Notes under the pieces: model-generated
The model's database searches: none
Told to the model about the DNA's origin: nothing
The model's input: the letters and a program-made list of their open reading frames with translations, nothing else
Translations under genes and position numbers: made by a program
Origin: Octopus sinensis
Lineage: Eukaryota
Direction of reading: 5' to 3'
DNA length: 31,382 nucleotides
NCBI RefSeq assembly: GCF_006345805.1
Contig: NW_021832308.1
Coordinates: forward strand, 1-31,382
Shown here: piece after piece, positions 1,789 through 29,059 of the stretch
Layout of the letters: every line of letters begins with the position of its first letter
How positions within the stretch are numbered: the first letter of the stretch is position 1

Positions 1789-2018
1789 TTTGTAAATTGA
1801 CAATATTTTATTATTATTTAAATGGTTTTTAAAAATGAATTTATATATTATTTTTATTAAAATATCAAATAAATCCAACTTTATGAGAAAATCATTTTTC
1901 TTAAAAAGTTAGAAAATGCTAATTCTTACGGACAAGCCACCATTCTTGAAAACGCAAATTATTTTTGCTTCCCTAAAATTATCTAAAATGATTGTAGCAT
2001 GTTTTAGATTATTCTTTT

Positions 2019-8167: not shown

Positions 8168-8208
8168 TCTTTTATCACTTTTGCTTGAACTAAATGAAAT
8201 TTGCGTTT

Positions 8209-8705
8209 AGCGGCCCCGGAGTATGACAAGATTCAAATGGTCTGTTTTAAAAATGCGCCGAATTTTTTGGTGTTTTTGCTTACAAACCTTTTCAATTCCA
8301 GTCTGTAGAAAGTATACGTTTCCAAATCATGAAAAAAATGAATTTTGAATGGTTCGAAAACCTAAGAAACATAAAGAAAAGGTCTTAAGCTATAGGCATA
8401 TAAGCCTAATTTGTTCTACTTTAAAGAAAACAAGAAGATCATTTATAACAGGCTAGTATTGAATATAGAAAAGAATCACTGACTTTTTCACAATCAGTGG
8501 AGTTTTCGTCCGGGGCGGTTCTGTGCTAACTACATCTATCGACTGAATTCTTTAGTATCCAAAGCACAGAATTCTGCTTATCGACCACTATCATCTGTTT
8601 CGATGTGTCGAATGGTTTACACAGTGTCTGTCACTCCGTATTGGTAGAAAATCTTAGAAACTGTCAAATTGATGCAAAAACACTTGGCTGGTCAGCGAGT
8701 TTTCA
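8209..8705 (+). mobile_element. Degenerate non-LTR reverse transcriptase fragment (CR1/L2/Jockey-like RT subdomains 0-3)
   Basis: Conceptual translation through stops and frameshifts gives APEYDKI...LTNLFNSSL...NQWSFRPGRFC...ICFDVSNGLHSVCHSVL, corresponding to the canonical QxGFRxGRST and DxSKAFDxVxH motifs. Confidence 0.7.
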
Positions 8706-8729
8706 AGTTTAAAAATTTGAATATATAAA

Positions 8730-10614
8730 TGTCACCGGCCACAACTGTTACTCCGCCAGATATGTTTACACCAACATCAAATTGTCAAGTTGGAAAAAAC
8801 TTAAAACATGAATCCTTTGGTATATTTCTATGAAATCAAAGAAAACTTATAAATTTTTAAAAAATATTGATGTTTTTTTAAATTACAAATACACGTTAAA
8901 AATGCGTTTAGTGCAAGTAACAAAGGAAGACTTAGAATTACTTAAGGAACTTAAGAGCAATCCTGAGCTCGTATTCGTCAGCAGGACGCTTTCGCGGATG
9001 CAAAGATCAAGACTACTGAAATTAGCAAATAAATTTGATTTTTTGGATGGAGCTCCATATATCACTAAAGATGGACTTAAATTAAGATTTTTCTGCAGCG
9101 ATGAAGCTGAACTTAAAGATAAATATATTGAAGTTTGCATAATAAATGTTTATTTCAATTGGCTGAACATAATTTGAATCATTTTGGTCGAGACCGGTTG
9201 TTTTCAAAATTGGCGCGCTTATACCACGGAATATCACGTGCAGAGATCAATCGTGTCATAAAACGATGTATTCCTTGCCAGTTTTAAGTTTTTTTTATTA
9301 ATTTTTTAGTCAAAAAAATCATTGGCTACTAAACCCCCAGTTACGCCGATCATTGCAAGGCGGAGTCGCGATCGGTATATCGCCGATTTAGTGGACCTAA
9401 GGAGATATTCAGATATTAATGATTCTTATAACTGGGTACTTTTGGCTATATAAAGATTAGATTCTTGTAATGTCGATTCTTTTTCGAAATTCGCGATAGT
9501 TGAGTTATCTTTTACCAAAAGAGCTCATGAAATTGCTTCGTTATTTCAGAACATCTTTTATTATATTGGGCCACCATTGATCTTGCATACAGACAATGGT
9601 AAAGAATTTTGCAATGACCATGTCGCCCGTTTATGTGAAAAGTACAAAATTAAACATGTCCGTGGACGACCAAGGCTCCTTGGGTACAGGGACAGGTGGA
9701 AAGGTTGTAAGATAACATTATTCTTTAGACTAAATCAGAGTATCAAAAGATGGATTTCATCTAAAAGTTACTCTGATGAATGTTTTGGACGCTATTGCGA
9801 TATAATCAAAGACATTGTTTTTGATTATAACAATACTGTCCATTCCACCACAAAAAAAGTCCCATTTAATCTATTTATGGGCATAAAATATCCTATTGAA
9901 ACATCAGAGGAGGAACTAGAATCATTGTTATTGCAAAATGATGACATAGAATATTTGGAAGAGGAAAGGAATGAAGCGTATGTAAATATTCTGTTGGCAG
10001 CTGATAAAATGGCTCAGAGAAGAAAATGGAAGTATGACGAGGCTACTTTTAGTGTAGGAGAGATAGTAATCTTAAGGTATTTGGGATGTATAAACATGTA
10101 ATTTAGGCAAGATAATGACGCTAACAAACGACAATATCCACTTTATGATGGATTAGAGATGGTGAAATACACAATTGTGGCAAAAGACGATTTTGTAGTA
10201 ACAATACAAGTGAGACAGGTGACATGTATGAGAAAATACATGTTTCACGCTTATTAAAATTGGGAATGATCCTCTTTTTTGTGATTCCTTGATAGAAAAC
10301 GTTTTAAACTAATAAGAGGCTTTTAAAATTTTTTTTATTAAAAAAAAAGAATAATTATTTAATAAAAAAAAGATATGGATAAGCCAAAATTAAATAGATT
10401 GCTAAATAATTTAAAACTCATATTTTACACGGTATGTTGGTTTTTGGGAAAAAATTCATGTTTCAGTCCAAATTTTTTCTATTCAGAAAAGCATATTTTT
10501 GCGAACAATTAGGTTATGTTTTGTATTAATTTTTAATTTTAAAAGTTTATATTTCTATTTATATGAATTTTTAGTGTAACATATCTGGCGGAGTAACAGT
10601 TGTGGCCTGTGACA
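8730..10614 (+). mobile_element. GingerRoot/Ginger-like integrase-type DNA transposon, 1885 bp, with TIRs and a 6-bp TSD
   Basis: Left TIR 8730-8771 TGTCACCGGCCACAACTGTTACTCCGCCAGATATGTTTACAC. Right TIR 10574-10614 is its reverse complement with 1 substitution and 1 indel. Termini are TGT...ACA. TATAAA is duplicated at 8724-8729 and 10615-10620. Confidence 0.9.
8830..10257 (+). pseudogene. Intron-containing rve-type transposase of the element (HHCC zinc-binding plus DDE), disrupted by 1-nt deletions
   Basis: Spliced translation gives EHNLNHFGRD...RCIPCQ (HHCC), RYIADLVDL (D), LHTDNGKEF (D) and QGQVER|LNQSIKRW (E). At least five 25-30 nt intron-like inserts. Three single-base deletions are needed to keep the frame. 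Confidence 0.8.
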
Positions 10615-11380
10615 TATAAATATGTGAATATATAAATATCTCAAAAAAGTTCATATAAATTAAATTATTTTTTTATATTTAAAATTCTTTGAAACGCACA
10701 AAATATGTCTAAGGTTGGGAAACTATGAATTATCCTAAGGAAAAAACAATGTACACAAATTATTATCTGCCTAATTGAATTTCGTCTACTTTCGGAGACT
10801 GCTATTTATTTATCGGGCAGCTATTCTTCCTGTGTTGATGTATGTGAGGGCAAACCTTGTCCTCTTCTAAAACAAGAATCATCAAATTAGTTGAGAAAAC
10901 AAGGAGATTAACGTTCAAGGCGGCCCTTAGCGTGAATTTGATAGACGAAATTCCGAACTGGTACGAAACATTATCGATAATTGTTAAAAACCAGTTCCAG
11001 AAATTTCTAGACAAGAGAAGAAAATAAATATGAACGACTTACATTGCCTACAACTGGCCCTTAATTTTTATGTCAGCTATTTATCAATTATGGCCAAATC
11101 CACAATCCACAGAGTCAAGTAAAATTAAATCTCGTGGGACTTAAATGACGCCAAATTTGAATATTTTAAATCCTTAAATAATGAAAATAATTTTTTTAGA
11201 TACTGTAAATTAGATTATCACGAGATGATCTTTAATACAACTATTTCTGATTCCCAAAAAGATAAATTAAAATTTCAATAGCAAATATCTAACAGGATGA
11301 GAGAGATGTGACTGTGGACGGGATTCCAGTCAAATGCTAATTCTGGCACAAAAGATTGAGTTGTAAAAAGAATTGATTCG

Positions 11381-12416
11381 TCAGATTGAAAGAAACCGTT
11401 GAGCGACAACTCGTCTACGAAGAAAAATATTTGGGTGCGCTCTGTTAAAAGAACTGTTCAACAGCTTATGCCAACCCTCCAATGAATTGGTCGTCCTGGG
11501 CATTGACTTTAATACTCGATAAAAACAACTCCAAAAACTGACGTCATAAGATGGGTCAGCAATAAATTGGTTTTGAAAATAAACCAAAAAATTCATTATC
11601 TGTTGGTTGTTTTCTTTTTTTGTCGCATCAAGAGAAAATTTTTCAAATTCCATTAAAACATTTTCCACAGGGATGAAAGCTAAATGGTAGCATTTTCTCA
11701 ATAATTTTCGTTCCCACGATGAAACGTCTTTGTAGGCTCCCACAAGACCAAGACATTGTATTTTCCGCCATATGATTTGGCCGAAATGGAAATTGCAGCC
11801 AAATACATAGACGACGAAAAAACTGATTTTGTGGATTAATTACCCCTTTTCAAAATCAATTAAAATACCTGCTGGTGAAGTAACAACAAGTGTCTTTATT
11901 TCTTCAAATAATGCACAGTAGGAATTTTCTGTTTTGTTGAGCAAAAGAGCGTGCGCAAGAGGCCAGAATTTACCTAAGTATTTCCTTGTATTGTAATCAT
12001 TTGTTCGAATTGATTAGGCACGCTTTTAAAGGTACCATCAATAACCCAGACATCTGATTTTTTTCAAAATGTCAATCTGATAATCCGAACAAAAAATGAC
12101 GTAACGATTTACATCATTAATTCCAGAATCCTGCGATAAAAAATTTCGCCCCGATCATTATACCACAAACTTTCAGGAATTTCAGGAATGGTCGGAACAA
12201 AATTTGTATCAGTGTTTCTCTTTCCCGTTGAACGAGACGAGTCAATGAACGTTCCTTTGGCAAGATTTTAATGACGTCAACATTGGCTCCAATGAGGCTT
12301 CTTGACACCACATTCATAGTTCTGTCTTCTGACGCCTTTGCGGAATCTTTCAGGTCAGAAACTAGTTTCATGCTTTTTATCTCATGATCCTCAAAGGGGC
12401 CATGATTATTTAGCAT
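11381..12416 (-). mobile_element. Decayed Mutator-like (MULE) transposase
   Basis: WVIDGTFKSVP (D), ILIDFE (D), GCNFHFGQ (CxxH) and PRTTNSLEGWH (E). Frameshifts and an in-frame stop are present; the 5' end abuts another element at about 12430. Confidence 0.85.
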
Positions 12417-12431
12417 TTTTTGTGCTCAACT

Positions 12432-12707
12432 TGTTTTAGGAGATTATGTTAATTCTCAGGCATTAATGCTAATTTAAACTGAAAACTTGAAATTTTAAAA
12501 ATCTACTCGAAAAAATCAAGTTTTTAATATTACTTAATATTAGAATTTTTTACAGAAAATAAAGGAAATAAAAAAACTATCTAAAAAAACTCCAAGAAAA
12601 TAACAATGTCTATTTCGTTATGACGTATTACAAATTTCAGAAATTAAAAAATTGAGAATTCAAGTTCATTATGGTAATTGCCCGGATTAATGACTTTCCC
12701 CGTAACA
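12432..12707 (+). mobile_element. Short (about 280 bp) internally deleted, non-autonomous derivative of a KRBA2-like TGT...ACA transposon
   Basis: Contains RYDVLQISEIKKL and EFKFIMV (KRBA2/SCAND3-type transposase pieces) fused to a terminal ...ATTGCCCGGATTAATGACTTTCCCCGTAACA. 12443-12475 matches the inner TIR seen at 28581-28612 in inverted orientation. No TSD found. Confidence 0.6.
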
Positions 12708-13452
12708 TATACACCAACAAATACGTTATTCTACTAATGTCAGTCAGTCATGTACAAACACGATGGGTATTATCACTCGTCCAGAGATCCTCCATTTCAA
12801 AGATGATAAACAGTAAAAGAAAATGATTTTAGATTTGAGTAAACCAGTTTACAAATACTGAAATTGGAATATATTTGAGAAAAAGACCAAAGTAACAAGA
12901 AAATTAAGCTTTGGTAGCCTCAAAAAGGGCAGCTTCCTCAGCAATCAAGGTCTCTCTCTCCTGACTGCTAAAAAAAACGAACATGAATATTATTCTGATG
13001 AGAATATTCAGACAAGTTCACATCCGTACAAAGCGTGACTGAGGTTGATCTCACAAAGAGAGAGGATCAACTTATCACATAAAATGGGTTCCCGAAACCG
13101 AATAAAATGACTTGATAAATGTGATTGAATACTCTTTTGATATTCTTCGGACTTCTTCGATCAAAACATTCGCATCCACAGTTGTTGCCACAGTGTCACT
13201 GTGTTATGCTTTATTAATGTAACTCGTGTAGTTTGTATATTTTCTCGGGATGATACGTCGAGAAGAGAATGAACTGCTCTCTACTCTGATTTATTCTAGG
13301 CAGTTTATTCCTATGCAGGGGGATGACTTCTGATTGCCTTCATGGAGTATTCTATTTAATGTAGCCCCCTTCTGGTGAGAATGTTGTCGTGTATATATTG
13401 TGACTAAATTATCCTTATTAGATCTATATTAACATATTATTAATCATTTTAT

Positions 13453-15203
13453 TCAAGTTAACAAGTAATTATGCCGAATGTCAATATCGCCGAGAGTAAT
13501 GTCGATCAGAGTGCAATCTGAATGAATCACCGGAATGTCTGATGGACTAATAATTGATATATCAGGTGTTGAATATTCAAACATATTGTCGTGATGAATC
13601 ACCTCGGTTATTCCCCCAGTCTGTCCACCCTCGTTTGACTGACCCCACATGCGGGTGCCTCTTCTCGTAGTGGACTTCTCGTCGACTTACATATATTCTC
13701 TTGGCTAATTCTGCTCGTTCTCTCTCTAACTTTTCTCTCTCTCGTTTCAATGCCTCCCGTTCTCTTTCAAGTCGCCTTTCTTCTTCTCTCAGGTAACCAT
13801 GGTGACCTCCCCTTTCTTTGATGTGCCGACGGTTGTCATGACGATTGGGAGTATGTTGTTTTTGGCGGGAATATCGACGAGGAGGGGACTTTCTGGAATA
13901 CTGATAATCAGGGAAACGCCGAATTTTGGACTCATCATTTGGGCGGGAATTTTTTTCTTGTTTTTTGGCGGGAAGTTTGAATCTGTTTTTCCCAAAAAGT
14001 GAGTCATCTGAGTCACTCCAATTCAAATTCGGTCGTTGTGGTACTGCTATTTGATAGATGGGGTTATTCGAGGATTCAAACGTTTTTTGGCGGGAGAAGG
14101 AGACCGTTTTTGGGGGGTTTTTTGAGAATTCAACATTTTGAGGATGTGGAGACTTGGCTAAATTATTCCCGCTCTTTTTAACCTGGTCAAATTTGAGGAC
14201 TGATCCTTCAATTTGTGACTCATCTCCACTTTCCAGACACTTTTTTGCAGACGCGGGAAATGAAAACTCGACAAAGCCGAATTTGGTGGACTCCTTCTCC
14301 GAATTTCGCGCCAAAATGAGTGCCCTCACCACCTGGATTGACTTATTTAACCAACCTGTCCATATTTTGTGAAATATGTCCTCAGATAATCTGCACAGAC
14401 TGTGTTTGGAAAGTTATATACTAACACACTTGACTGACTAAGTAATTCCAGATCTAATATAATATATTTTAATTTAATTTAAACTAAATATTTATTCATA
14501 TAATATTATTTAAATAAATTATTTTAATATATAAATTAAATAGAGCGAAAATTTAACTATTTGTTATATGTTCTTGTGGTACCAATATTCGTTTTGTAAT
14601 ACATATAATTAATTAGTGTTTTAATAGTACTAATTAATTTACTAAATGTATATTTATACTATTAATTAACAAATAATGACTAATTAATATATAATAAACC
14701 TGTTTTATCATCCATTGTACTTTCATCCCTCAAGACAATCATATCCGGGCTTGTGGAGACAGATTCTTTGGGGAAATTACCTCCACAGTTCTTCTTCTTG
14801 GCCTCATTGATGGACTTTCTCAAATCATTTTCATTTAAAGTATAAGAAACACTAAAAAATAACTTTTAGCACACAATAAACGTCTCTTCTGAGTTGGAAT
14901 TGCCGTCTTGTTGCTTCTGGGCAATTTTTACCAGCAAATTTTGCCGAAGAATGTTCTCGTGGGCCAATTTATTTTCATTTTCGTAGAGTAATCGAGTCGT
15001 GTCTGTCTCTGCTGACCTGTGGGGGTTTCTCTCTGCTTGATATGTTGAGACAGTGGGAGTTACCTGTGGATATTTCAGAGTCTGATCCATTGTCGTGGAA
15101 GATGTAGTCATCTGTGTATTCTGGGTCAAAGTCGGGGTACTGGGGGGTTCCTTCTATGGTTAGGTTTGTAAAGAAAACCGTCTTTTTTGGGGTATTTATT
15201 CAT
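13453..15203 (-). CDS. SAFB/SLTM-like RNA-binding protein (acidic N-terminus, single RRM, R/E-rich coiled coil)
   Basis: ATG at 15203. Introns at 15178-15154 (25 nt), 15063-15036 (28), 14881-14852 (30), 14699-14454 (246, AT-rich) and 14355-14333 (23) give a continuous frame. The RRM VLVYNF...FTKYGQ|VVRAL...KFGFVEFS...AKKCL resembles the SAFB RRM; downstream is EERRLEREREALKREREKLERERAE. The stop is at 13577 unspliced, or at 13453 with a 28-nt intron 13648-13621. Confidence 0.75.
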
Positions 15204-15575
15204 TTTATGCTGTTTTTAGGTCTAAAATGTTGATAAAATGGTTATTTTTGTATTATAATTGGTAATGTTAGGATAATGGTAAACACACCACAACAAACGG
15301 TATTAAATAAAGTGAGTCATTATATTAATATTTATATTTAAATAATAAATTATAATAATAAGATATATTTATTAAAGAGATGATTTATTTATTAATTTTA
15401 ATGCTAATAACATTTAATTATTAATTTTCTTTTGCCACCTGAATTTATTTAAAAACGTCATTTTTAATATTTTATTATTTTTATTCTGTATTTTTATTTT
15501 AAAATTTAAATGTATAAATATAATTAATATTGGCAAACCTAGACTAATAAATATTGATAATTAATTTATTCATAA
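15204..15575. promoter_or_regulatory. Putative bidirectional promoter (very AT-rich spacer between divergent start codons)
   Basis: 372 bp between the SAFB-like ATG (minus) and the Arp3 ATG (plus); the core 15300-15570 is almost only A/T. Inferred from gene layout; no specific motif identified. Confidence 0.5.
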
Positions 15576-16988
15576 ATGGACACTCTTCCTTGTATTATCG
15601 ATGTCGGGACAGGGTACATTCTACAAATAATCTAGACGGACAAAAATGGGATTCGCCGGCCATGAGATCCCCCAGTACACAATCCCCTCATACGTGGGAG
15701 TAAAAGAGAGCACAGGAAAGGGCAAAGTGGGCGTAGTCCCCAAAGTGCTGCAAGACCTCGACTACGCAATAGGAGACGACATATATGCACATGCAAGCCT
15801 AACACAAAAAGTAGTTATAAACCATCACGTAGTCCCCGATGAAACACGGAATAATCCACGACTACACACTCTATGAGAAACTAATGAGTTCGTCGATATA
15901 TTCCTTCCTTGGAGTAGACCCCACCAACCATCTATTCTTTTTGGTGATTAAGTCATCATTAAATAGACCGAACCACCCTTAAATACTCCTGAGAACAGAG
16001 AATTCTTAGCAGAATTAATGTTTGAGAATTTTGGTGTGCGTGGAATGTATATTGGAACTCAGGCTGTGATGGCCTTGATGGCTTCCTGGGTCAATCGGGA
16101 CTCAAAAGATAGGCCAACTACAGGAATTGTGGTCGATTCTGGGCATGGATTGACTCATATAATTCCAATTGTACAAAAATAGGAATATTTTAGGCTGATT
16201 GTTACGCGATTGGGACTGCTATGAAATATGTCCCGATTGCGGGGACGGAAATGACAGCCTTCACTCAACAACTAATCCGCGACAGAGAAAATGGAATCCC
16301 CCCAGAATCAGTTTACGACGTAGCCAAAATAATCAAAGTAAATAAAACTGATAAATGACAGGAACAACACTGCTATGTCTGCAAAAATATTGTCAATGAA
16401 TTTGACAAATTTGAATCCACGCCTGAAAAAATACTCAAAATATTCAAAGGGGCTCATCCCGTCACCAACAAGCCATTCGAATTCAACATGGCCTATGAAC
16501 GGTTCATGGCCCCTGAACTCCTCTTCCAACCTGATCTCTTCAATTCTGAGTTCAACACGTCTTTGGACAAACTCATCTTCTCCTCAGTCATGGACTGCCC
16601 TATCGATGTCCGTAGAGGACTTTTTAAGGTTTTTTCCCGCGCTTATTGATTTTTTTAGAATATAGTTTTTAGTGGGGGGTCGACGTGTTATCCTAATCTT
16701 CACCGACGAGTTGAACAGGACTTGAAAAAACATGTGGGAGCGCGGGAACAAGGGGTTGTTTATATTTGTTGATTTTTTAGGGGAAATTGATGGAGGTTGT
16801 GGTCAATGCTCATTCCAAACAAATGTTTGCTGTGTTTTTTGGGTGTTCGATGATGGCCTCGACGGTTTTTTGGGTGTTTTTTTGAGGTTTAGCCTGAATT
16901 TAAGAAGGTGGTGCACACTCGTGCTGATTATTTGGAACATGGGCCTGCCATTTGTCGACATAATCAACTTTTTGGTGTGTTAGGCTGA
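15576..16988 (+). CDS. ARP3: Actin-related protein 3 (Arp2/3 complex), 404 aa, 9 exons
   Basis: GT-AG introns at 15614-15635, 15811-15832, 15944-15966, 16171-16193, 16338-16361, 16629-16658, 16755-16780 and 16865-16892 (22, 22, 23, 23, 24, 30, 26, 28 nt; total 198). The spliced CDS is 1215 nt with no internal stop. Motifs: [39 protein letters not shown], and the Arp3-specific C-terminus [13 protein letters not shown]. Confidence 0.97.
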
Positions 16989-17255
16989 TTGTTGTGGGAT
17001 ATTTCATAATAGACAGAAATATTAAATAATTTTTTTGACTAATAAAGAATATATTGGAATTGGTTTTCTTTTTAAAAATTGGTTTCTATTTTAACTAAAT
17101 AATGTACAAATTAAGAATATGGATTATGACAATCCAGATATACCCCACAAGGACATATTTGTAAAATATTTTATACTAAAATTAAAAAACAAATTAATTT
17201 GATGTTAATAAGATTAAAAGATATAACGAAATTGGTTAATAAAAGTTAATTTAAT

Positions 17256-17441
17256 TTACTTCATATATGCATATCTACCATTATTAAAGGGATCGTTAGA
17301 GTTTTGGTGGTGATTCTTTTGGAAATAACTGTGGAGAGGCGGCAATACGATTTTCTCGACATACCGTTTGTTATTGGCAGTTTGTGTAACTTGATAGACA
17401 GTCCCATTCTTGTCTCGCACATTTGTTACTTTATAGTTCAT
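17256..17441 (-). CDS. Possible small gene or terminal exon, unknown product (61 aa)
   Basis: ATG-started ORF ending at the AT-rich spacer that also ends Arp3 (convergent layout). No recognisable motif. Confidence 0.25.
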   Translation of the reverse strand: MNYKVTNVRDKNGTVYQVTQTANNKRYVEKIVLPPLHSYFQKNHHQNSNDPFNNGRYAYMK

Positions 17442-18199
17442 TAGAAATTGTCAAATGAACTACGATTTATTATATAGACAAAAATTTGGATTATATTTGT
17501 GGTTAGGTTGATATTGGTTATTTTTAGATATATTTTTGTTTTAATTTATGAAACATGTTCTTTAAATTTGAAATTAGAGCTTATCCACGTTCTCAATAAA
17601 CTTCCATCTTTCCAAAATGCTTTTCCTTGTAAGCTAAAATTGATATTTACTCTCCAGAGGTTTTTTAGGAACAACCCGAAAAGACGCTGTTGATTTGAAT
17701 GACTAGATCTATGAAACAATAACCATGTTTATTTGACTTTTATAAGATTCAGATCTTTCATAAAAAGTGTCAAAATACAATCCCACGTTGATCATTTATT
17801 ATTTTAGAAGGTTGCTGTTAATGGTGTTATCGACAGGAGCTACAATTCATTATATCCTTTTTTTTATTTAATTTACTCTCCGATATCAAAATTTTTTTCA
17901 AATTTCCAAAATGAAAACTTGATCTTTGAATGTATCTCAAATGATTGTAGTGTGCTTTGCCGTTCCGGAAATCGTATATTGAAAAAGAAAAAACAAAATT
18001 TCATTAAAATGACCAGATTGCTATCAAAAAATTGTTGGTCTATTTGGCGACATATACAAATCCAAGTGGCTCACAAACTGTTTGCAAAGCACGGGTCATA
18101 CGGAGACTAAAGGCTTATATGTACAGATTAAAGGAATAAATCAAAAACTTTCAAAATATAAAATAGACAGATAAAAGAAATTAATTATCACAAAAATGA

Positions 18200-19790
18200 T
18201 GAAATTTTAGATAAGTTAATCATTAAAAGAAACTAAAACACAAAATATATCTTCCGAATTTAAAAATGTTTTGATTTTGACCTACTCAGTCCAATCAGAG
18301 GCCTAAGAGTTTATTCGAATAAGAGTTGATACAAAAATCACAACTGATACTGTCAAAACTAACAAACAGGATATTTTAAACAGACGAGGAATACGATAAC
18401 GCTTCCGAATCTTGAATTAGGAAAATGATCAAAGACAATGACAAAATTTTCCTTTTCTTGATCGCTCTAAAAGAAGATAGACATGCATATCAGCTTGAGA
18501 AAAGTGAACTAGCCATCTCCATTTCTAGCCAAAAGTGATGGTCGAGTGTCCAAGTCAATTTCAAATTACAGAAAATTAAAAAGCTCCTGTCTGCTATAAG
18601 TGAACAACACGTTTTGGATAATAATCACGGAATAGAAAATATCCGAACACTTGAAAAAGATAAACACAAAATCTTTCAGCGCCACTAGCCAACATGGTAT
18701 TACTTGTTCTCTCCATCATCCGATTCGTTTACTTCTCTCTACTTTTGGGTTGTCGATCAAATTTGGCTATCCCATGTCCAAACCGGGTAACGTAGTTTTT
18801 CAGGTGCTATATCTTCTCTGCTCCCACTAATGTTTTTTCTGTTGGTTTGTATTTATATTGACATGAATAGTGACATACAAGTCATATTTCCTTTTAATCA
18901 CCTGTCCAAAACTAAATAAAGCTTTCGTTTGTGAATCCAAGACTGAACGAAATTTTGGTTTTTGGACAGATTTTATCAGGATCGAACTCCTTGACTGTCC
19001 AAGACTGTCAACTAGACCACTCCTTACCCAGAATAGCACATCCACGTTGATCACACAATCAATGACCAACTCCTTATTGGAATCTGTTTTTTATGTAAAT
19101 GAGAAGTGTCGATATCGGAAAAATGGGGAGATTATGTGAGCAAGAAAACTCGGCATAGTGGACTTGTCATAACATTGACTCTAATAAGTCATTATCTCTC
19201 TCCGTAGTTTAATCAAAGTGTTCATTAGAAGTTTGATTCTGTAATAGATGAGGCGTACTCCATAGATATAAACATAACGGGAATCAGTTTCCAATAAAAG
19301 TGGTTGGAAAGTAGTAGAAATAGACGGGTATTAAATGAAACTGATAACTTGTGCAGCAGAGAAAAAGTACCTTTTACAGCATCGCATATTTGAACATTGA
19401 TATAAAATACTTTGACTTGTTCATTGAGAACAGGGACGCCACAAACGACCAAATAACTACCCAGAGAGCCCTAGAAATTGCTACCCAAATAAAATATTGT
19501 GGAAGGGACAACCTTCCGTAAGCCAATCCTCTGTAGGAATGTCCCTCAAATAGTACCCAACTGGACTAACCCAATAACTATCAGTCAACAGTCTCATGCT
19601 AACCAGTTCGAGGTACACAGAGACTTCAAAGGAAAGTTCGAGAAGATTCGAGAAGGTTCGAAAGGACTTAAAGTCGGAGGGTGGGTGGGCATAGAAGAAC
19701 TGCGACGGAGATGTGCATTCTGAGTTTATTACGGCTGTTAAAGACAATTTGGATTCTTATTTTGGGTAATGTAATGATTACTATCATTTC
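18200..19790 (-). other. Possible unidentified intron-split gene or pseudogene divergent from KSR
   Basis: GC-richer than the spacers, with several 70-90 codon minus-strand open frames and multiple 23-34 nt GT-AG candidates. I could not assemble a unique or recognisable protein. Confidence 0.25.
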
Positions 19791-19890
19791 TTTTTATAAT
19801 AAAGATAATAATTAAAAATATATTATGAAAAATTGATATATAAGTAAAATAATAAAATAATCCGGTTTGAGGTTTAGGGTTGATGTGGGT

Positions 19891-22481
19891 ATGAATGATT
19901 CAAAAAAGATATACAAAAAATGTCATATTATATCCAAATTAATCGCCGCCAAATACGAGTATATGAGACTACTGGAAGCGGAGACTGATGAATCATTTCA
20001 AATAGTAGAAGAGTTGAAAGTATATCTATTAAACGATTAAGCATTCAATTCTCCACTTTATGGCACTTCAAATATTTCTGAGACAGTCCGTTGACTGTGG
20101 AGGCCTTGAGGACTTTCCTGACTCACGATGCTTTTTTTATGCTATTGGAATATGCAAAAAATCTTATCAGGTTTTTTTATTAATTAATTAAATATTTATA
20201 TTATTTATTAATAATTTATTTAAGATGTCTACCCAAAAAATAATAGACTATTTTGTTTAGAAGGTATGATGTGGCACTTTTGTATATTTTGAAGGTAATA
20301 CCACATTCCTCGGTCTATGACCTAACCACCATGAATAATGAAGACCTAAAAAGGACATTATCCTCAATCTCCCTCAACCAGAATGAAATAAACATAATAT
20401 ATAACAACATTAAAAAACTAGCAGGATTAGTCGGTATAATCAGTTCAACAAAAATAAAGATTTACTTCAAAAAACACCCAATTTTGATTGGATGCTCTCC
20501 TCTTCAATACAGCAGAAGACTGTAGGGGAGATTCTACGTGGAGGACAGCCTCAACACGTAGACAGGGGTATCGATGTGTATATTTCTGCCCATGTAGTAA
20601 TCGACTCAGCCATCTCGCCGGAAAAACACAAAAAAGAGAACATTTTTAAGTCGAATTTATTAAAGTTGTGATTAAATAATACAAAATAGATTTAAAAATC
20701 ATTTTAAGGCACTGAGTGTCTCATCCGATGCTAAGAGTTCACAAACTAGCCTTCAAAGTACGTCTGTAATGAGTGTACCACTAGCAGAGGTATTTTAAAA
20801 TATTTATTAAAATATTATTTTATGTTTATTAATATTTTAATTATTAGGATGATACATTAAAATATAGAAATGAACTATTAACTGGTATAATTTATATTAT
20901 GATAATTCAAGTCAAAAGGGCAGCGGATCTCTTTGAAGATCTAAAGAGGGAAGCCGGTCCTCATTCGTAGGGTTTTATAACTAAGAAATAGATTTGTACA
21001 AAAGTCAATAATGTTTATGTGCGATGTATGTAAAGGATATATTCTCAGAGGAGTTATTTGTGAGTTTTGCAAGTATAAATAATAATAATAAATATTATAA
21101 AATATTTATAATATTATTTTTAGATTTAAATGTCATGAAAAATGTTCACAAATACAGAAAATTTGCATTCCAAAACACGAATTTAAAAAATTTGTAGAAA
21201 ATTTAAAAAAAGAAGCCAATCACAACCAAAATGTCGTTTCTATTGCTAATGAATTAAAAAAATCTCTTTACCGACAAATTCCGTTAGTCATTTCTCCCTC
21301 TGACTACTCCCCGGTGACCCCAATCAGTAAATCTTTATCCAAAAGTTTATTCCATAACTTTAATTCCTGGTTCCACGTCTCCAATGATTCAAAAAACATC
21401 AAAGGAAATTGCCGGTCCCTTTGATGTATGTTCAAAGTGATTGAATATTAGTTCAACGATGAAATCAAGCAGTGGGAGATAAACCACGACGAGTTGGAGT
21501 TTATTTCGATTATAAAAAACGGACCTCGTTCGACCATGTTTAGGTTATTGGAGAGGGTGTGAGGATAGGGGTCGCTGGCATGGGGATATGGCCATTAAAG
21601 TATTCGAGGCTGATCATTTCGGAAGGAATCGTTTAGATTTTTTGAGAGAAGTATTTTTGTTTTTTTAGTTTTTGGTGTCGGTTTTGATGAAGACGAGACA
21701 CGATGGGTTGGTTCAGTTTATGGGGATTTCGATGAACGGTCCTCAACTTATGATTGTATCACGGTTTATGTTTTTTATTTTTATTGGCAGTTTTTGTCGA
21801 GGGAAAAAGTTGGATTCATATTTAAAGTGTCAGAGGAGTGGTCCTTCTTATCAAAGGGTACTGTCCTTGGGTGTTCAAATAGCTCAGGTGGTGGTTGTGG
21901 GGTACTTTTATTTCATAGGCATTGGGGTACCTGCATAGTCGGGATATTACTCACTGTGATCTCAGATCTGTCAATATATTTGTCGATAGTGGGAAAATAA
22001 CTATTATTAATTTTGGGATATATAAACTGGAAAGGTTTATTCTTTCTAGAACATTCTAGAACGTTCTAGAACATTTGGAATTTTAAGATTCAGTCGTGGT
22101 TGGTTGTCCTCCTTGGCGCCTGAAATCATTCGGAAGGTCTCAGGTTTTTCTACTGACTTTGAATTTACCAAGTTTTCAGATGTTTTTGCCTTTGGGTATT
22201 TTTTTAGTTAATTTGAAGTGCATTATTATTTGAAATGTTTGGGTTGGAAAAGCCATTTGAGAATGATTGTGCAGAACAGGTCATTTTAAAGGTAGGGAAT
22301 GGGGTATTCCCGTCAATTGGATCATTGTCTATTCCGAGAGAGACTATGGTGGATGTCGGGTTATATTGGATAGGACTTGGTCTCTCATTGTATGCGATTT
22401 GACCCACTGAAACGACCTTCGTTTGAAATGCTGATTGACCGATTGAACACAATCTCAAGCCGACACAAAAAAGCACTTTAA
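19891..22481 (+). CDS. KSR: Kinase suppressor of Ras (KSR) scaffold pseudokinase: CC-SAM, C1 zinc finger and TKL kinase domain; about 17 introns
   Basis: N-terminal LEDFPDSRCFFYAIG...VYDLTTMNNEDLKRTL (CC-SAM-like); C1 domain HSFVQK...CDVC...CEFCK|FKCHEKC...C; kinase motifs RGRWHGDMAIK, KTRHDGLVQFMG, YLHSRDITHCDLRSVNIF, GWLSSLAPEIIR and SDVFAFG. Introns: 20020-41, 20171-294, 20434-59, 20665-89, 20790-847, 20885-911, 20967-91, 21073-123, one of 21327-45 or 21377-404, 21426-51, 21544-68, 21651-68 (or -74), 21764-90, 21888-918, 22035-69, 22196-218, 22349-73. Stop TAA at 22479-81. Confidence 0.92.
22044..22073. repeat. 10-bp tandem triplication (TTCTAGAACA/TTCTAGAACG/TTCTAGAACA) across a KSR 3' splice site; perfect heat-shock-element geometry
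   Basis: TTC-TA-GAA-CA-TTC-TA-GAA-CG-TTC-TA-GAA gives six alternating nGAAn units and includes CTAGAACATTCTAG. Function is unproven. Confidence 0.85.
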
Positions 22482-22609
22482 TAGAATTTTGTTTTAAATG
22501 ACCTAATTAAAGACGATTATATTTATTATTATATTTGTGGGGTTTCATGATATAGATTGAATAATTATTGTAGAGGAAATAACAGCTAAAATCAAATATA
22601 GTTTATATG

Positions 22610-22814
22610 TGTTATGGGCAATGTCATTAATCCGGGCAATTACCATAGTGATCTTAAATTCTCTATCGGGTTGAGTTTGCATATCAATCAAATCAATTTG
22701 GCATCTTGAATTAAAATGTTCACTTTGAATAGGTTTAACTACAATTTCCTTCTTGTGAATTTTCGCTTTTTCTGGCGTTAAATAATGAAATTTGATTTTA
22801 TCAAATCCAGACAT
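22610..22814 (-). mobile_element. KRBA2/SCAND3-like (GingerRoot-type) transposase fragment fused to a TGT-type TIR
   Basis: VVKPIQSEHFNSRCQIDLIDMQTQPDREFK followed by the same coding-to-TIR junction as 12654-12707 (48/54 nt identical, opposite orientation). Confidence 0.75.
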
Positions 22815-22821
22815 CTAACTA

Positions 22822-23340
22822 CAGTCAAACCTCTCGAATCCGTCATTTTTCAAATCCAATTGTTTTAGTTAAAAATTTTGAATTTCTTATAGAAGATTTT
22901 CGAATCCGCTCGTCATTAATTTGAAACAAAAAATTTTTTTTCTTAATTGTTAATTAAATTAATTGTCATTTAAATAACACGTCACATTGTTTTCTTGAGA
23001 TGCCTCGTTGTACTAGATTTTGTATCACGAAAAAATTTTTATTTTTGGTTATATTTCTGAAACTCGTCAATGGATTTCTAGAATATGGCTATATTGAAAA
23101 TTAAAACTATTGAATTTTTGGAAGGGCAATCTCGAGAAGATGAAATACTTCAATCAGTACTTGATTTTATTTAATGACTTAAATTAGGAAACAAGTAATG
23201 TTGAAAAAAAAGTTGAGCTTTCGGAAGCTTACAGAGCACTAACGAACATTAAACTTACATTTCTCAAATCAAAAATTCAAATATTGATGATCCCGAAAAT
23301 ATTACAAAAATTGGCGAACCGGGTAGAAAATCAAATAAAA
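22822..23340. mobile_element. pogo/Tigger-like remnant
   Basis: TA followed by CAGTCAAACCTCTCGAATCCG (pogo-type TIR start) at 22820-22842, and decayed coding-like sequence including ELSEAYRAL. Other TIR not found. Confidence 0.45.
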
Positions 23341-23377
23341 AAGAAAATATTTATTTGAAAAAAATAAATTTATTATA

Positions 23378-24120
23378 CAGTTGAACCTCTGCACCAATAG
23401 AAATCCGCCCCAAATACAGAGGGTATGATAATTTATGATTCACAATTTCAATACCACACCAATCATATAATTGAGAGTCATTTTCAGTTCCATCAAATTC
23501 TATTTGCATTAAATCTGAATTATGAGTCTCCAAAAGTTCAAATTGAATGTTTTGATTAATTTCGAAATCATTAATTCATTTATTTTATTTTAACAATTAT
23601 GTCTTTTGTTACTCGATTCAATGCTTCTCTTACATATATGATAACTTGTCGCATATTTATCTTCAATAATGTCTCATAATAATGTCTAATAAATATCGGC
23701 AATACAAATTTCTCATAAAAAACATTTGAATAAGTAATTTAAAAGAATTGATGATCCCCATTTCAAGGGTTTAAAGAATGGTAGTTGTATTCTTTGGAGG
23801 TTTGAGGAATGTAAGATTTGAATAATTTAGACATCTATGACATTATTAAGAAGAATTAAAATTTTTGGATTTTGTGAAAATATTTCATCATTGTTTTAAA
23901 TCATTACTTCATAATCTTGAGTTCTTATATTTTTAAGACACCTGGGTGATTTATACTTTCCAATAACCAAAGGTTTTAACTTTTCACCTTTAATAGAACA
24001 GCATAAAAAATTGTTATTTTTTCTTTACAGATTTTTCTATCAAAGCAATTTTCATCTTTAGTGACAAATGATTTATTCGGATTTTTTTAATGAAAAGCAG
24101 GTTTCTTCACAATTAAAAAT
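23378..24120 (-). mobile_element. Decayed pogo/Tigger (DDE_1) transposase with TIR
   Basis: TA|CAGTTGAACCTCT at 23376-23390. Minus-strand translation gives NCEETCF...LCCSIKGEKLKPLVIGKYKSPRCLKN...KILILLNN...PPKNTTTIL.PLEMGIINSFK. Confidence 0.75.
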
Positions 24121-24867
24121 GTCAAAAAAAAACGGTTAGTGTTGTGGTGCTTTTACAGTTTCTGAAAATTATCTCGATATAACCTTACTTTACACAATGG
24201 GGAAAGACCTGGCACCCACCCCTTTCTTCTTGTTGCCTTGCAAATTCTTCTGACAAATCCTTCACGGATCCTTCTGCCCAAATTATCAATAACGTTACCC
24301 TTTCCTACTAATGTGCGCATTGCGGATTCTCACAAAGGCACGTGCTTCGGGAGAATGGTATAGGAAAAGAAATCTTGCTGTCTTGTTCGCTGGAAAAAGG
24401 AAGCAGAATAGCAGAGCTGGTGGGGGATAGAGTTCGTGGAGGGACTTGTCTTACAGAATCGCCAATGGCCGGAATCGGCTGAATATGGCTTAACTAACTA
24501 ACTATGTTGAATTTATCATAAAGTCACCGTATTCTTCGTAAAATTTTTTTAATTGAATTTTTGTCAGAGGAATTTTTTCACCAGACATTGATAGTTCATG
24601 ACGTTTTTTAAAGCGGTCTAGCATCCATTAGAGACTTTAAAGCTGCTAAATTTATAGGAGTTGCGATATTTCTGCAATTTTTGTAAATTAAACATCAGGA
24701 AATTGAAATTCCATCTTGCCTCAGATTCCTTAAAAGATCAAAAACCAGACGATCGAGTTTCGATGATTTGATTCATAATTTTTGTATAGAAATGCGTCAG
24801 TAATAGGATTGGAATCAAATCCTTGTTTATCGTTATTATTAACGCACTTATTGTAGAGCCATAATAA

Positions 24868-25480: not shown

Positions 25481-25694
25481 AAATTGTTGTATAATTACTA
25501 AACCAGACGCTATAATTTAAAATAAAATAATGCATTAAAATTTCATTTAAAATTATTTATAAAATGTCCCAATACGCGGGGTCAATAAATTTTTATAGAT
25601 TTTAAAAATGTAACTTTTAATTAGAATTGATTATTTAAAATTTTAATTCTCTAAGCATAAATAATGAGTTTTCCCGATTAAATTAACATATCAT

Positions 25695-28548
25695 GCCTTT
25701 TTCCATTTATCCTGCATCAAGCTTTCTAAGAAATCTGCCTCTTCCCTTTCCCGATGGGTTTGCTCTGCTTGCTCTTCTTTCCCCCCGTCATATTTCGCTC
25801 CTGCCATCTGTACCGGGTCCTCTGATTTTACTAATCCTATCCCTTCGCCGGACCCCTTCCTGCTTAATCCAGAGTCTGTCTTAAGACTCGCTCGTGATTA
25901 CCGGGCGTCCTATCGTATTCCTATAAGAATTCCTCGTTCTGCCCGTTTTTCCGCGGCGAAGGCTCTGTCTGCTTTGATCGAGTCAGTCATTTGTGTTCAG
26001 TCCATTCCGAATTGGAACCGTTTGTTTTGCTTTGCCATATTTGCCCTGGGCTCCCCAGTTCAAGGCTTGGGCTCGGTAAAATCCCTTTCCTCTTCCATCA
26101 AGGAAAATATTAATAAGTTCATGGAGGATTCCTTCATTCTGCCTCCTCTTCTGGGCAAGTCCCATGAACCAACTACTCTTAAAGATAATCGTATTCGTTT
26201 ACGCAAACGTGTCAATTCCTGCCTTATGGCGCATGATGTCGGCTCTGCGGTCCGTATTCTTTCGTCTTCCGATTCCGTCCGTTCGATAACCCCGGATGTC
26301 CTCAAAATTCTCAGCGCCAAGCACCCGGCTGGCGATGTCCCTGCCTTTTGTGCCCGGACCCCTGAGGAGGTCTCGATCGCCTCTTCATCTGTCCAACAAC
26401 TTTTGTTAGCTTTGAAATCTTTCAGGGGGAACAGTAGTGGTGGTGTTGACGGTCTCCGTCCCATTCACTTAATGGACCTCATCTCCAATACTGCTGAGGC
26501 TGGAAACCGTCTTTCTCAATCCATTGCCAAGCTTTGTAACCTATTTCTCCGTGGGGACATATCCGAGCATGCCAGACTGCTCTTCTTCTCTGCGAACCTG
26601 TCTGCTTTGGGGAAGAAAGACGGCGGCATCAGACCTATTGCCGTCGGGAACGTTTTTCGTCGCTTGTTTGCAAAGGTCGGATGCAAGCTTGTAATTCCTT
26701 CTATTAGCGACGAACTCCAGCCCATTCAGTTGGGTGTGGGGGTACCTGGTGGGTGCGAGGCCTCGGTCCACGCTGCCCGGTGTTTCATTGAATCGGCTCG
26801 TCTCTCAGAGCGGCCCCAGTTATTATTAAAATTGGATGTGAAGAACGCTTTCAATTCGCTCAATAGAAAGCATCTTCTTGAGGTTTGCAAGGCCAGAATT
26901 CCTTCTCTGCTGCCCTTCATTTTTCTTTCTTATGGTAACCCGACCCTCTTGGTTGCTGGCGATTCTTTCATTTCGTCTTCCTGTGGCGTACAGCAAGGCG
27001 ATCCTTTGGGTCCTTTATTATTTGCCCTCTCGGTGGACTTTGTCGCCCGCAGGATTGCGTCCCCTCTTAATATTTGGTATTTGGACGACTGTACTATTGG
27101 TGGTCCGCCCGACATTTTGCTAAACGACTTGCAATCTCTACTCCCGGCGTTGTCATCTATTGGTCTTGAAATCAATTCTCTAAAATCTGAAATCGTTAAT
27201 CTTAACGTCGAAGACCTCACCTTCGAAGACCTTTTTGCCCAGTTTCGTGGCCTCTTGCCCGATCTGAGGCAGACCTCTTATCTGAACTTGAAATCCTGGG
27301 TGCCCCGATCCACCACCAATCGGTCTCTCGTATTCTCGATTCCAAGAGAAATGCTCTTGCTTCTCTTTGTGATAAACTTGTGGACATCGATCCCCATCCC
27401 GCTTTTTTTATCCTCAAAAACTTTCTTTTGATTCCGAGGATCAATTATGTCCTAAGGAGTTCCTGTTGCTTTTCTGTTCCCTCTGCTTTGGAGTCTTTTG
27501 ACGCTCTGGTGCGTTCTTCAGCCGAGATTATTTTTAACGTCAAGTTCGATGATGTCGGTTGGCGTCAGGCCAAACTTCCTGTTCCTTTTGGTGGGCTTGG
27601 GCTCCGCTCGGCTCTCGACATTTCTCTTCCCGCTTTCCTTTCATCGTCTTCAGGATTGTATCTTCTTGTCCATAAGATTCTTGAAAAATCGCCCGGATCT
27701 CGTTTGGACTCTGATATTAATTCTGCACTTTTGCTTTGAAGGAAAAAGGGCTTGAGTTCCCTTCTGATAGGTCCCTCCAACGTGAATGGGATAAAATTCT
27801 TAGTAAGCATCATGCGGACTCGTTGGAGGCTCTCCTGAACCAGCACAGACTGGCTTGTTACCGTGCCAGCCGCCAACCGCATTCTGGCTCTTGGCTTAAC
27901 TGCCTTCCTTCGACCCATTTGGACACCTGTCTTGACTCCGACGCCCTCCGTTTTGGCATTTGCCTCCGCCTCGGACTTCCGATCTGTAGTCCCCACCCCT
28001 GCCGGTGCGGATCTACTATGGACGTATACGGGCTCCATGCCCTCTCCTGCAAGAAAAGCGCGGGTCGTATTCCACGCCATTCGGCGATTAACAGAATCAT
28101 TCTCGACTCACTCGAAAAGGCCGGCTACCCTTCTGTCCTTGAGCCTAAGGGTCTCGACCGTGGTGACGGGAAAAGGCCGGACGGCTCTACGTTGTTCTCG
28201 TTTTATTCTGGGAGACCTTTGGTCTGGGATTCCACTTGTGTGGATACCTTCTCAAAGTCTTTCATCAACGAATCGGCCTCTCTTGCTGGGTCTCGTGCTA
28301 ATAAGGCTGAGCTTTCGAAGTGCCGGAAATATCAGTCTTTGATGGATGACTTTTGGTTTTGGCCAATCGTTGTCGAGACTTCCGGCGTCTTTGGCTCCGG
28401 GACCCTCACTTCCCTAAAGAAATTGGGACATCTTTGTTCTTCGCGGTCCAAGGACCCTAGGGAATTTACTTTCCTCATTCAGAGGATCCTGCTGGCTGTC
28501 ATGCGTGGCAACAGCTGTTCCCTCCGTCTCGCTGGGAGAATTTATTAG
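25695..28548 (+). mobile_element. Near-complete CRE-clade non-LTR retrotransposon: partial PHD-like finger, RT, CCHC and RLE; two 1-nt frameshifts
   Basis: RT motifs GGVDGLRP, KKDGGIRPIAVG, KLDVKNAFNS, GVQQGDPLGPLLF and WYLDD; CRCG...HALSC zinc knuckle; RLE KRPDG...WDSTCVDT...K..KY...VETSG. The frame is open from about 25668 to 27280, then shifts at about 27278 and about 27737. Confidence 0.93.
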
Positions 28549-28580
28549 TTTGTTGACTTTACTTAGTAGTTTGACCCTAA

Positions 28581-28643
28581 GGAATTAACATTAATGCTCA
28601 GGAATTAACATAATTGCCCAGATTAATGACTTTGCCAGTAACA
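28581..28643. repeat. Solo TIR of the KRBA2-like TGT...ACA family
   Basis: 28611-28643 is 30/33 identical to 12675-12707 and ends in GTAACA. Internal direct repeat GGAATTAACAT at 28581 and 28601. Confidence 0.65.
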
Positions 28644-29059
28644 TATTCATTGTTTTTTCATTTAAGTCGAGTTAGTTAGAAATGAATACGAAAAGCTACT
28701 TTTTTTAATTTCTATTTGCTCAAAAACCAAAAAATAACGTTAATGGCACGAGAATAATTAATATTGATACGCGGTCCAGCCACTGACAAATCCCAATTGC
28801 TAATGTAACTTTTTTTTGTTTTCTTTCAGAAAGAAAAATTTTAAAAAAATACATGAAATTAAATCTTTTTTGAAATTTTGCATGAAAAATTAATAAATAT
28901 GGAAAAAATAATATTTCCCAATTTTTATGAAACTTGTTCTTAGGAATTAACTGCTAAGTCAGATACCTTTGAAGTGAACACAGGATGGCTCTTTACTCAC
29001 CTCCTTCCATTCTTCCTGTTCTCTAGAAGTGGTGCTAAAATGAATGTCTTTACAAAATT

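Follow-up and report, generated by a model that had tools for sequence, protein, structure and literature searches.

Sign-reversing strand composition along short-intron genes of apparent dicyemid origin in the Octopus sinensis assembly

A 31,382-nt contig filed as Octopus sinensis DNA, referred to in its entirety as the window, carries genes with very short introns whose strand composition reverses along their length: the sense strands of its Arp3 and KSR-like genes are A/C-rich in the 5′ part and G/T-rich in the 3′ part, introns included. Across 12 genes on four contigs, we observed this 5′-to-3′ trend in two of the three window genes and in 9/9 new genes. Composition is expressed as keto excess, (G+T-A-C)/n, with each gene split at its own flip. 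The Arp3 and KSR models were hand-curated against homology and the nine new genes were given approximate spans, because fewest-intron and longest-chain dynamic programming proved unreliable; the models it produced, which read through real introns in G/T-rich DNA and over-extended across transposons, were discarded. Window features are listed in Table 1.

Strand composition within Arp3 and the KSR-like gene

A sequence-only reading of the window that preceded this analysis had counted the bases of the Arp3 introns by hand, and its counts are exact: introns 1-5 together hold A50 T33 C13 G18, and introns 6-8 hold A9 T51 C5 G19. With the GT/AG ends removed, the two sets differ both in A versus T (Fisher P=5e-9) and in A+C versus G+T (P=9e-10). 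Between the 5′ and 3′ parts of the gene, keto excess rises from -0.23 to +0.69 in introns, from -0.26 to +0.38 at 4-fold degenerate sites, and from -0.21 to +0.24 at third codon positions, with smaller changes at second (-0.13 to +0.04) and first (0.00 to +0.10) positions. GC skew at 4-fold sites moves from -0.21 to +0.24, and over the first and last thirds of the gene it is -0.06 and +0.18; beyond the stop codon it holds at +0.25 for 400 nt.

The KSR-like gene follows the same trend, as had been claimed from one early and one late intron, which map to 20434-20459 and 21888-21918, respectively. Its keto excess changes from negative to positive at ~21.4-21.5 kb, going from 0.00 to +0.45 in introns and from -0.27 to +0.17 at 4-fold sites; GC skew shifts from -0.37 to +0.33 at 4-fold sites, and is -0.02 and +0.29 in the first and last thirds. 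Sense-strand G runs are present in the 3′ parts of both Arp3 and KSR. The split points in these two genes were picked after inspection of the data, and it is for splits so chosen that the P values range from 1e-5 to 1e-11. As a separate observation, intron lengths are not unimodal: besides a class of 18-35 nt, there is one of ~51-58 nt that is nearly pure A+T (0-1 G or C), and the long A+T introns at 20171-20224, 20790-20847, and 21073-21123 are T-rich even within the A/C-rich 5′ half of KSR.

Protein coding does not account for these shifts, in agreement with what had been argued from the introns. The change grows from first and second codon positions to third positions and 4-fold sites, and again to introns, and the amino acid content of orthologs barely changes: among 60 aligned Arp3 orthologs, the fraction of G/T-type residues goes from 0.28 to 0.33 between the two parts, with the dicyemid protein overshooting slightly in the expected direction. 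Because the less-constrained site classes shift more and the orthologs shift little, we rejected amino acid composition as the cause and regard it as a consequence.

When the three window genes are divided into 200-nt bins, AT skew falls as GC skew rises (Spearman rho -0.63, P=3e-4), as is expected if one strand takes more C-to-T changes, gaining T and losing C. The same strand logic is familiar from bacterial leading strands, vertebrate mitochondrial DNA, and the non-template strand of transcribed genes. If C-to-T change on one strand is responsible, the more exposed or less repaired strand would be the antisense strand in the 5′ zones and the sense strand in the 3′ zones.

Penalised segmentation over the whole window, blind to gene positions, returned blocks at 13181-15500 (keto +0.12), 15501-16600 (-0.11), 16601-17570 (+0.19), 17571-21490 (-0.05), and 21491-22400 (+0.27), and no such domains in the transposon-rich 1-13 kb and 22.4-31.4 kb. 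The domains are 0.9-2.5 kb in size with abrupt transitions, within 60-120 nt, and they are not necessarily gene-bounded, as that at 16601-17570 spans the 3′ third of Arp3, an AT-rich spacer, and a small minus-strand open reading frame (ORF). Together with the site-class shifts, the segmentation bears out the proposal that the effect is kilobase-scale and strand-asymmetric.

The third window gene, the SAFB-like gene encoding an RRM and Arg/Glu-rich protein, is A/C-rich on its sense strand throughout, remaining A-rich to its end. The sequence-only reading had included its first introns in the trend, and introns 1-2 are indeed A/C-rich and G-poor, although intron 3 is T-rich and the gene never flips. 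A G/T-rich 3′ end of this gene was considered and rejected, the plus-strand A/C-rich block at 12650-13050 being a repeated integrase-like transposon fragment. The SAFB-like model also contains a 246-nt AT-rich gap (14454-14699), which either is a long intron or separates two genes. A motif scan of the window did not find the LRR gene that the same reading had named.

Source of the window and recurrence in other genes

Judged by its gene architecture, the window is DNA of a dicyemid renal parasite that contaminates the assembly of its host, Octopus sinensis. A dicyemid rather than an octopus source is indicated because the window genes have 18-60 nt introns; the curated introns measure 18-58 nt, plus a single one of 246 nt. 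Dicyema japonicum ex O. sinensis has a GC content of 36.7%, 48.9% repeats, and a mean intron of 38 bp (PMC6736024), and its median intron is 27 bp (PMC6543705). Myxobolid myxozoans likewise have introns of 22-27 nt. Set beside the dicyemid figures (median intron ~26-38 nt, ~37% GC, about half repeats including long interspersed nuclear elements [LINEs], and O. sinensis as host), the window agrees: it has a GC content of 0.35 and is transposon-rich, about two-thirds of its length being transposon-derived, with LINE, integrase, Tc1/mariner-like, and MULE-like ORFs, and its KSR and Arp3 genes are of metazoan type. A comparison of Arp3 with the protein database returned no match above 50% identity, the full-length protein models of this organism being absent there. 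RefSeq labels the window proteins as octopus (e.g., XP_029655222.1, 'zinc finger CCCH domain-containing protein 13-like'), and the RefSeq and UniRef proteins derived from the window would be contamination carrying an octopus label.

Further contigs of the same assembly carry short-intron genes: L001 (VCDQ01001009.1, 509 kb), L003 (VCDQ01002209.1, 491 kb), and L007 (VCDQ01010278.1, 58 kb), all reached via LINE relatives labelled Octopus sinensis and with genes that chain through introns of <=70 nt, together with L002 (VCDQ01012423.1, 80 kb), which we also assign to the dicyemid type. Genes on these additional contigs include RapGEF, PNO1, Snf7, STPG, PSMB, RRP4, ECH, and RPP30. All four are probably dicyemid, contigs of about half a megabase among them, and another locus (L006), with a single-exon cadherin gene, may be genuine octopus. 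In practical terms, the window plus several contigs of up to 509 kb in the Octopus sinensis assembly are apparently dicyemid, and the RefSeq proteins derived from them are labelled octopus.

The 80-kb contig is an allelic copy, 97.9% identical to the window over 19.9 kb (window 4361-24140) and identical across Arp3; because this independent contig agrees, the window sequence is not an assembly quirk. The 213 substitutions and 259 gap columns between the two are very unevenly placed, with none in 8-11 kb or 14-17 kb and the most polymorphic stretch, with ~25 substitutions in 400 nt, at 17571-17980; this looks like two haplotypes with identity-by-descent blocks. The pair yields no informative mutation spectrum, since 14-17 kb is free of the 213 substitutions and the G/T-rich domains hold ~18 of them.

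These contigs also bear on whether gene-sized DNA processing in dicyemids could underlie the pattern, with chromatin diminution or extrachromosomal circles exposing fragment ends as single strands. Passages of PMC6543705 that cite Noto et al. 2003 report extrachromosomal circular DNAs and somatic rearrangement in dicyemids, and the composition pattern is symmetric within each unit. We nonetheless give this explanation almost no credence. The processing on record is somatic and so would not be passed on, and most of the described circles, whose median length is ~700 bp, are non-coding (PMC6543705). The genes are colinear on two long, independent contigs (31 kb and 80 kb), and a search of the switch points revealed neither a terminal nor a junction motif.

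Nine genes on L001, L003, and L007, not selected on composition, show that the pattern recurs. Their last third is more G/T-rich than the first in 9/9 (mean keto difference +0.21; t-test P=8e-4, Wilcoxon P=0.004), and the mean keto excess by decile of gene length runs -0.07, -0.11, -0.12, +0.01, +0.03, +0.05, +0.11, +0.07, +0.15, and +0.10. The mean shift is -0.27 in AT skew and +0.13 in GC skew. For nine LINE ORFs from the same loci, the keto difference is +0.02 and not significant, and the dicyemid non-transposon genes exceed the LINE ORFs in this measure (Mann-Whitney P=0.001). Thus, over the genes sampled, the profile is neither flat nor restricted to the window, two of the outcomes that the sequence-only reading had set against its own proposal.

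Pfam searches of single exons confirmed ECH, RPP30, RRP4, and Snf7 among the nine, and a WW-domain gene outside them; the other five (RapGEF, PNO1, the proteasome beta subunit PSMB, an STPG-repeat gene, and an unnamed coiled-coil gene) were identified by motif, read by eye without a family search. RRP4, ECH, RPP30, PNO1, and PSMB each have their best single change point within coding sequence of recognisable homology. GC skew in the first and last thirds is -0.17 and +0.14 for RPP30 and +0.07 and +0.45 for ECH, and the C bias at gene 5′ ends is weak in several genes.

Positions of the switches and candidate causes

We sampled one divergent, one clear tandem, one weak tandem (RapGEF-L001x, L001 ~17.6 kb), and two convergent junctions, and saw plus-strand switches from G/T-rich to A/C-rich only at spacers bearing a 5′ gene end, that is, at divergent and tandem junctions. 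One lies in the divergent spacer between the SAFB-like gene and Arp3. At the tandem junction in L007, where the 3′ end of ECH abuts the start of RPP30, keto excess drops from +0.40 to -0.18 at ~20280, 70 nt before the RPP30 ATG. The convergent junction of Snf7 and STPG (L003 ~6240) has no switch, with keto excess of +0.10 and +0.16 on its two sides, and nor does the spacer 3′ of Arp3. In both convergent pairs, one member (STPG in one, the small ORF in the other) is A/C-rich on its own strand to its end, and this block continues into the 3′ part of the facing gene. The 300 nt of sense strand 5′ of the ATG are near neutral on average, except where a neighbouring gene is present.

The sequence-only reading had proposed a process running inward from both AT-rich flanks of each gene, and this part of it does not hold: most AT-rich islands are not switch points, a G/T-rich block crosses the spacer at 17046-17241, and the junction at L003 ~6240 lacks a switch. 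We likewise rejected every AT-rich island as a source, since among 25 islands in 8 loci the left-minus-right keto difference exceeds +0.1 in four (+0.13 at window 12494-12596 and +0.24 to +0.27 for the remaining three), the others being within ~0.1 of zero or negative, to -0.17; most islands away from non-transposon gene starts show no switch. Because switches occur at divergent and tandem but not at convergent junctions, and most islands are silent, the sources appear to be spacers holding 5′ gene ends rather than all AT-rich flanks. A repeat search at the domain borders found no long inverted or direct repeats and no terminal or junction motifs. The statistic 'A/C-rich then G/T-rich' is invariant under reverse complement, which makes gene strand irrelevant; a gradient that follows genes from 5′ to 3′ and one that spreads outward from promoters are therefore inseparable by it. 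That 3′ ends are G/T-rich is no independent rule. Separately, a G/T-rich segment at L007 ~2780-3040 (keto +0.47, GC skew +0.77) is a degenerate interstitial TTAGGG-like array; the array gives a spurious segment, and we rejected 2781-3040 as part of the phenomenon.

The explanation that we tentatively favour, at somewhat less than even confidence, is a strand-asymmetric mutation pressure of the cytosine-deamination (C-to-T) type, anchored to transcription or to promoters. We favour it because the A/C-rich zone begins at gene starts, the DNA before the ATG is near neutral, transposon ORFs lack the pattern, and there is a fungal precedent. The asymmetry would be anchored at 5′ ends, in putative promoter-bearing spacers, and the strand leaving such a spacer in the 5′-to-3′ direction would be A+C-rich for a few hundred to ~2000 nt and G+T-rich thereafter. 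C-to-T change on one strand would leave that strand T-rich and C-poor, with the net sign changing along the transcription unit. This could come about in two ways: the strand that is exposed or repaired may not be the same in initiation-proximal and distal phases of transcription, or the distal portion of a gene may come under transcription from the next promoter, either that of a convergent neighbour or the upstream-antisense transcription of a tandem one. The second route would explain the junction rule. We infer a mutational rather than a weakly selected origin, a tie to transcription, and that the spacers are promoters.

The closest described pattern, known so far from fungi alone, qualifies the claim that nothing of the kind had been described. 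Genes of most unicellular fungi have a coding strand biased toward C at the 5′ end and toward G at the 3′ end, 4-fold sites and untranslated regions included, in a transcription-linked manner, and invertebrate transcription start site regions are stated to be C-biased (PMC3315797). The dicyemid genes share with the fungal pattern the 5′ C/3′ G polarity, its presence at 4-fold sites and reach beyond the coding region, the nudge to amino acid usage, and a strength that varies from gene to gene. In fungi, however, AT skew stays level along the gene and correlates positively with GC skew, and C-to-T deamination is argued against by the authors (PMC3315797); AT skew in dicyemid genes flips as strongly as GC skew and is anticorrelated with it. 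The dicyemid pattern is moreover found in an animal, is visible directly in ultra-short introns, has a much larger amplitude, and often switches abruptly with no ramp.

Transcription-coupled strand asymmetry has reportedly been described in animal introns, and a special regime is described in the first 1-2 kb of human genes. Non-coding transcribed DNA is affected in both the classical and the dicyemid case, and the G+T excess of dicyemid 3′ parts has the classical sign. Introns are affected most strongly here, and transposon stretches and LINE ORFs, which we assume to be untranscribed, have no gradient. The classical asymmetry has one sign along the unit and amounts to a few percent, whereas the dicyemid genes have a 5′ A+C excess, an in-gene flip, and neutral-site skews of 0.4-0.7.

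Several points weigh against anchoring by transcription or promoters. Classical animal transcription-coupled asymmetry is a uniform coding-strand G+T excess, with no A+C-rich 5′ part, and the amplitude observed here is far above known nuclear transcription skews, with the intron T:A ratio going from 0.6 to 8. The change point falls anywhere from 11% to 73% of gene length, and the SAFB-like and STPG genes are A/C-rich over their whole length. The key statistic, being unchanged by reverse complement, would come out alike for gene polarity and for a promoter-centred, symmetric process at the DNA level; the second route requires antisense or upstream transcription that is hypothetical; and the allelic substitutions are too few and patchy for a spectrum. 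Finally, the sample consists of 12 genes on four contigs, with approximate ends for the nine new ones.

Weak selection on the nucleic acid itself could act at all sites, keeping 5′ regions G- and U-poor against RNA structure and R-loops, and enriching 3′ regions in G so that RNA polymerase II slows or terminates ahead of the closely packed next gene; for fungi, a variant based on C-avoidance or a CTP ramp has been proposed. The strongest G skew is found at 3′ ends abutting the next promoter (L007 20021-20280, +0.51, with the RPP30 ATG ~70 nt past the switch), the 3′ parts of Arp3 and KSR have G runs on the sense strand, and the genome is compact, with spacers of 100-300 nt. Adaptive accounts have also been offered for the fungal pattern (PMC3315797). 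The greater shift of introns and 4-fold sites is as under mutation pressure, though weak selection would look alike. Against selection, the 3′ ends of convergent genes such as STPG and the small ORF are A/C-rich, not G-rich, when each is read on its sense strand, the G/T-rich zone starts 0.5-1 kb ahead of the stop codon, too early for a terminator, and the A/C-rich zone far exceeds the ~50 nt over which avoidance of 5′ structure is known to reach. We consider selection unlikely to be the cause. Classes of GC skew and R-loops are also said to exist at the 5′ and 3′ ends of human genes, and these resemble the dicyemid genes in that closely packed genes have positive GC skew at their 3′ ends, possibly in connection with termination; human promoters, however, have positive rather than negative GC skew past the transcription start site, tied to CpG islands and with no AT-skew flip.

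Recurrent double-strand breaks, meiotic or mitotic, in promoter or nucleosome-free spacers would give the observed geometry if 5′-to-3′ resection were followed by cytosine deamination on the surviving 3′-ended strand. To the left of the break the plus strand survives and becomes G/T-rich; to the right the minus strand survives, leaving the plus strand A/C-rich. Without any extra assumption, this predicts the correct sign at all four clear switches (15293-15547, ~17.6 kb, ~22.4-22.9 kb, and L007 20280), the 3′-ended strand being G/T-rich on each side at kilobase scale. A scale of 0.3-2 kb suits known resection tract lengths, symmetry about the switch is as seen, the anticorrelation of AT and GC skew suits deamination, and the switch region at 17571-17980 coincides with the most polymorphic allelic stretch. 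Strand-coordinated clusters of C or G changes that change strand at the break are established in yeast, and clusters arising from resected double-strand breaks have reportedly been described in yeast and cancers; these share with the dicyemid pattern C-type changes on one side and G-type on the other, the kilobase scale, and single-stranded deamination, and the sign they predict matches.

Such clusters are, however, individual somatic or experimental events, and we know of no evolutionary, equilibrium-level imprint of break-type clusters on gene composition. The same sign and scale are also expected from bidirectional transcription, and organisms with stable hotspots at promoters, such as yeast and birds, are not known for skews this large. 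Changes close to a break tend to be lost when the homolog serves as repair template, and dicyemids reproduce for the most part asexually; the A/C-rich zones of the SAFB-like and STPG genes are uniform over ~2 kb without decay, and most AT-rich islands lack a switch. On balance, breaks seem to us a quite unlikely source, their agreement in sign, symmetry, and length scale notwithstanding.

We regard a replication skew, with origins fixed at promoter spacers every few kilobases, termination between them, and an A/C-rich leading strand, as highly improbable. Origins do predict sign switches at fixed points whatever the gene orientation, and the flips appear to lie near the midpoints of neighbouring switches (16.5 vs. 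16.56 kb for Arp3 and 21.4 vs. 21.35 kb for KSR). Replication skew domains, the bacterial ones and the N-domains reportedly found in human DNA, share with the dicyemid pattern a keto-type skew and abrupt, orientation-independent switches at fixed points. They extend over 100 kb to megabases, whereas the dicyemid domains, at 1-3 kb (0.9-2.5 kb when set against replicon size), are one to two orders of magnitude under known replicon sizes. The sign needed at the source is also the opposite of that in bacteria and human N-domains, and the amplitude is far above nuclear replication skews. Furthermore, the long genes RapGEF and KSR are nearly neutral far from a switch, the Snf7/STPG flip is far off the midpoint, and transposon-rich DNA on the same contigs lacks domains.

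Mutation pressure anchored to transcription or promoters remains our preferred reading. The boldest reading, which we think has only a small chance of being correct, is that promoter-anchored bidirectional single-strand deamination drives nuclear gene composition in an animal to a near-mitochondrial skew at the kilobase scale; such deamination could come from break resection, or from transcription in both directions if exposure or repair of the strands is very asymmetric. In that case, sequence alone would reveal promoters or hotspots and how far the process extends, and the composition of ultra-short introns (A-rich or U-rich, and relevant to splicing) would depend on where they lie with respect to the nearest promoter.

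Should the reversal extend across the genome, dicyemids would provide the first demonstration in animals of a strand skew that changes sign within genes, and one of unusually large amplitude. The ultra-short introns make the signal at neutral sites easy to see, and with the fungal precedent, opposite biases early and late in genes become testable in a second, distant lineage. The skew shapes codon and amino acid usage and the composition of 20-30 nt introns, and is relevant to gene prediction, models of intron recognition, and phylogenetics of long branches.

Other features of the window

The small ORF tail-to-tail with Arp3 may be a minus-strand transcription unit facing it. The LINE at 25693-28564 has a counterpart on the 509-kb contig that matches it at 99.5% identity over 2874 bp, which suggests that it belongs to a recently active LINE family of the parasite. 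Transfer of this LINE from host to parasite was considered and dropped, as the 509-kb contig carries a 20-intron RapGEF gene (introns <=70 nt) and is hence dicyemid too.

Table 1. Features of the window, with the composition of domains and spacers
Feature	Positions	Strand	Basis and remarks
Window, complete contig VCDQ01008173.1	1-31382		Assembly GCA_006345805.1, filed as Octopus sinensis
Apparent transposon remnant	1998-2561	+	Reading of translations
Apparent transposon remnant	2832-3926	-	Reading of translations
Apparent transposon remnant	7580-8206	+	Reading of translations
Apparent transposon remnant	8812-10098	+	Reading of translations
Apparent transposon remnant	10800-12425	-	Reading of translations
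Integrase-like transposon fragment	12651-13050	+	Repeat search, translations
RRM and Arg/Glu-rich gene, SAFB-like (RefSeq: ZC3H13-like)	13608 (approx.)-15203	-	Model, Pfam RRM_1
AT-rich spacer (GC ~0.14), divergent 5′ ends of SAFB-like gene and Arp3	15293-15547	.	Plus-strand switch, G/T-rich (left, +0.17) to A/C-rich (right, -0.07)
A/C-rich domain, 5′ 70% of Arp3	15501-16600	+	Segmentation, 60-nt profile; keto -0.11, AT skew +0.14
Arp3 gene, 8 introns of 22-30 nt	15576-16988	+	Matches bovine (PDB) Arp3 at E=5e-129; composition flip ~16500-16620
G/T-rich domain	16601-17570	+	Segmentation, profile; keto +0.19, GC skew +0.29
AT-rich spacer 3′ of Arp3, convergent side	17046-17241	.	No switch; plus-strand keto +0.17 left, +0.12 right
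Small complete 61-aa ORF (MNYKVTNVRDKNG...), tail-to-tail with Arp3	17259-17441	-	No Pfam match; A/C-rich on own sense strand
Plus-strand return from G/T-rich to A/C-rich	17571-17980	.	Keto ~-0.17 at 18000-18500
KSR-like gene, 17 introns of 18-58 nt	19891-22481	+	Pfam PK_Tyr_Ser-Thr E=6e-33 and C1; flip ~21430-21520
G/T-rich domain, KSR kinase-domain exons and introns	21491-22400	+	Segmentation, profile; keto +0.27, GC skew +0.36, AT skew -0.22
LINE reverse-transcriptase element	25693-28564	+	GC ~50% vs 30% background; internal control, no 5′-to-3′ keto gradient

Pfam searches returned nothing for seven ORFs of 17.2-19.8 kb, nor for the ORF at 22548-22814. The types seen among the five transposon remnants are Tc1/mariner-like transposase, retroviral-type integrase, MULE-like transposase, and LINE C-terminal (restriction-like endonuclease) domains. 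The integrase-like fragment (peptide '...MVIARIND...') is present in three copies, at 12651-12711, 22606-22666 (inverted), and 28604-28649, two of which, mutually inverted, bracket a ~10-kb island of non-transposon genes.

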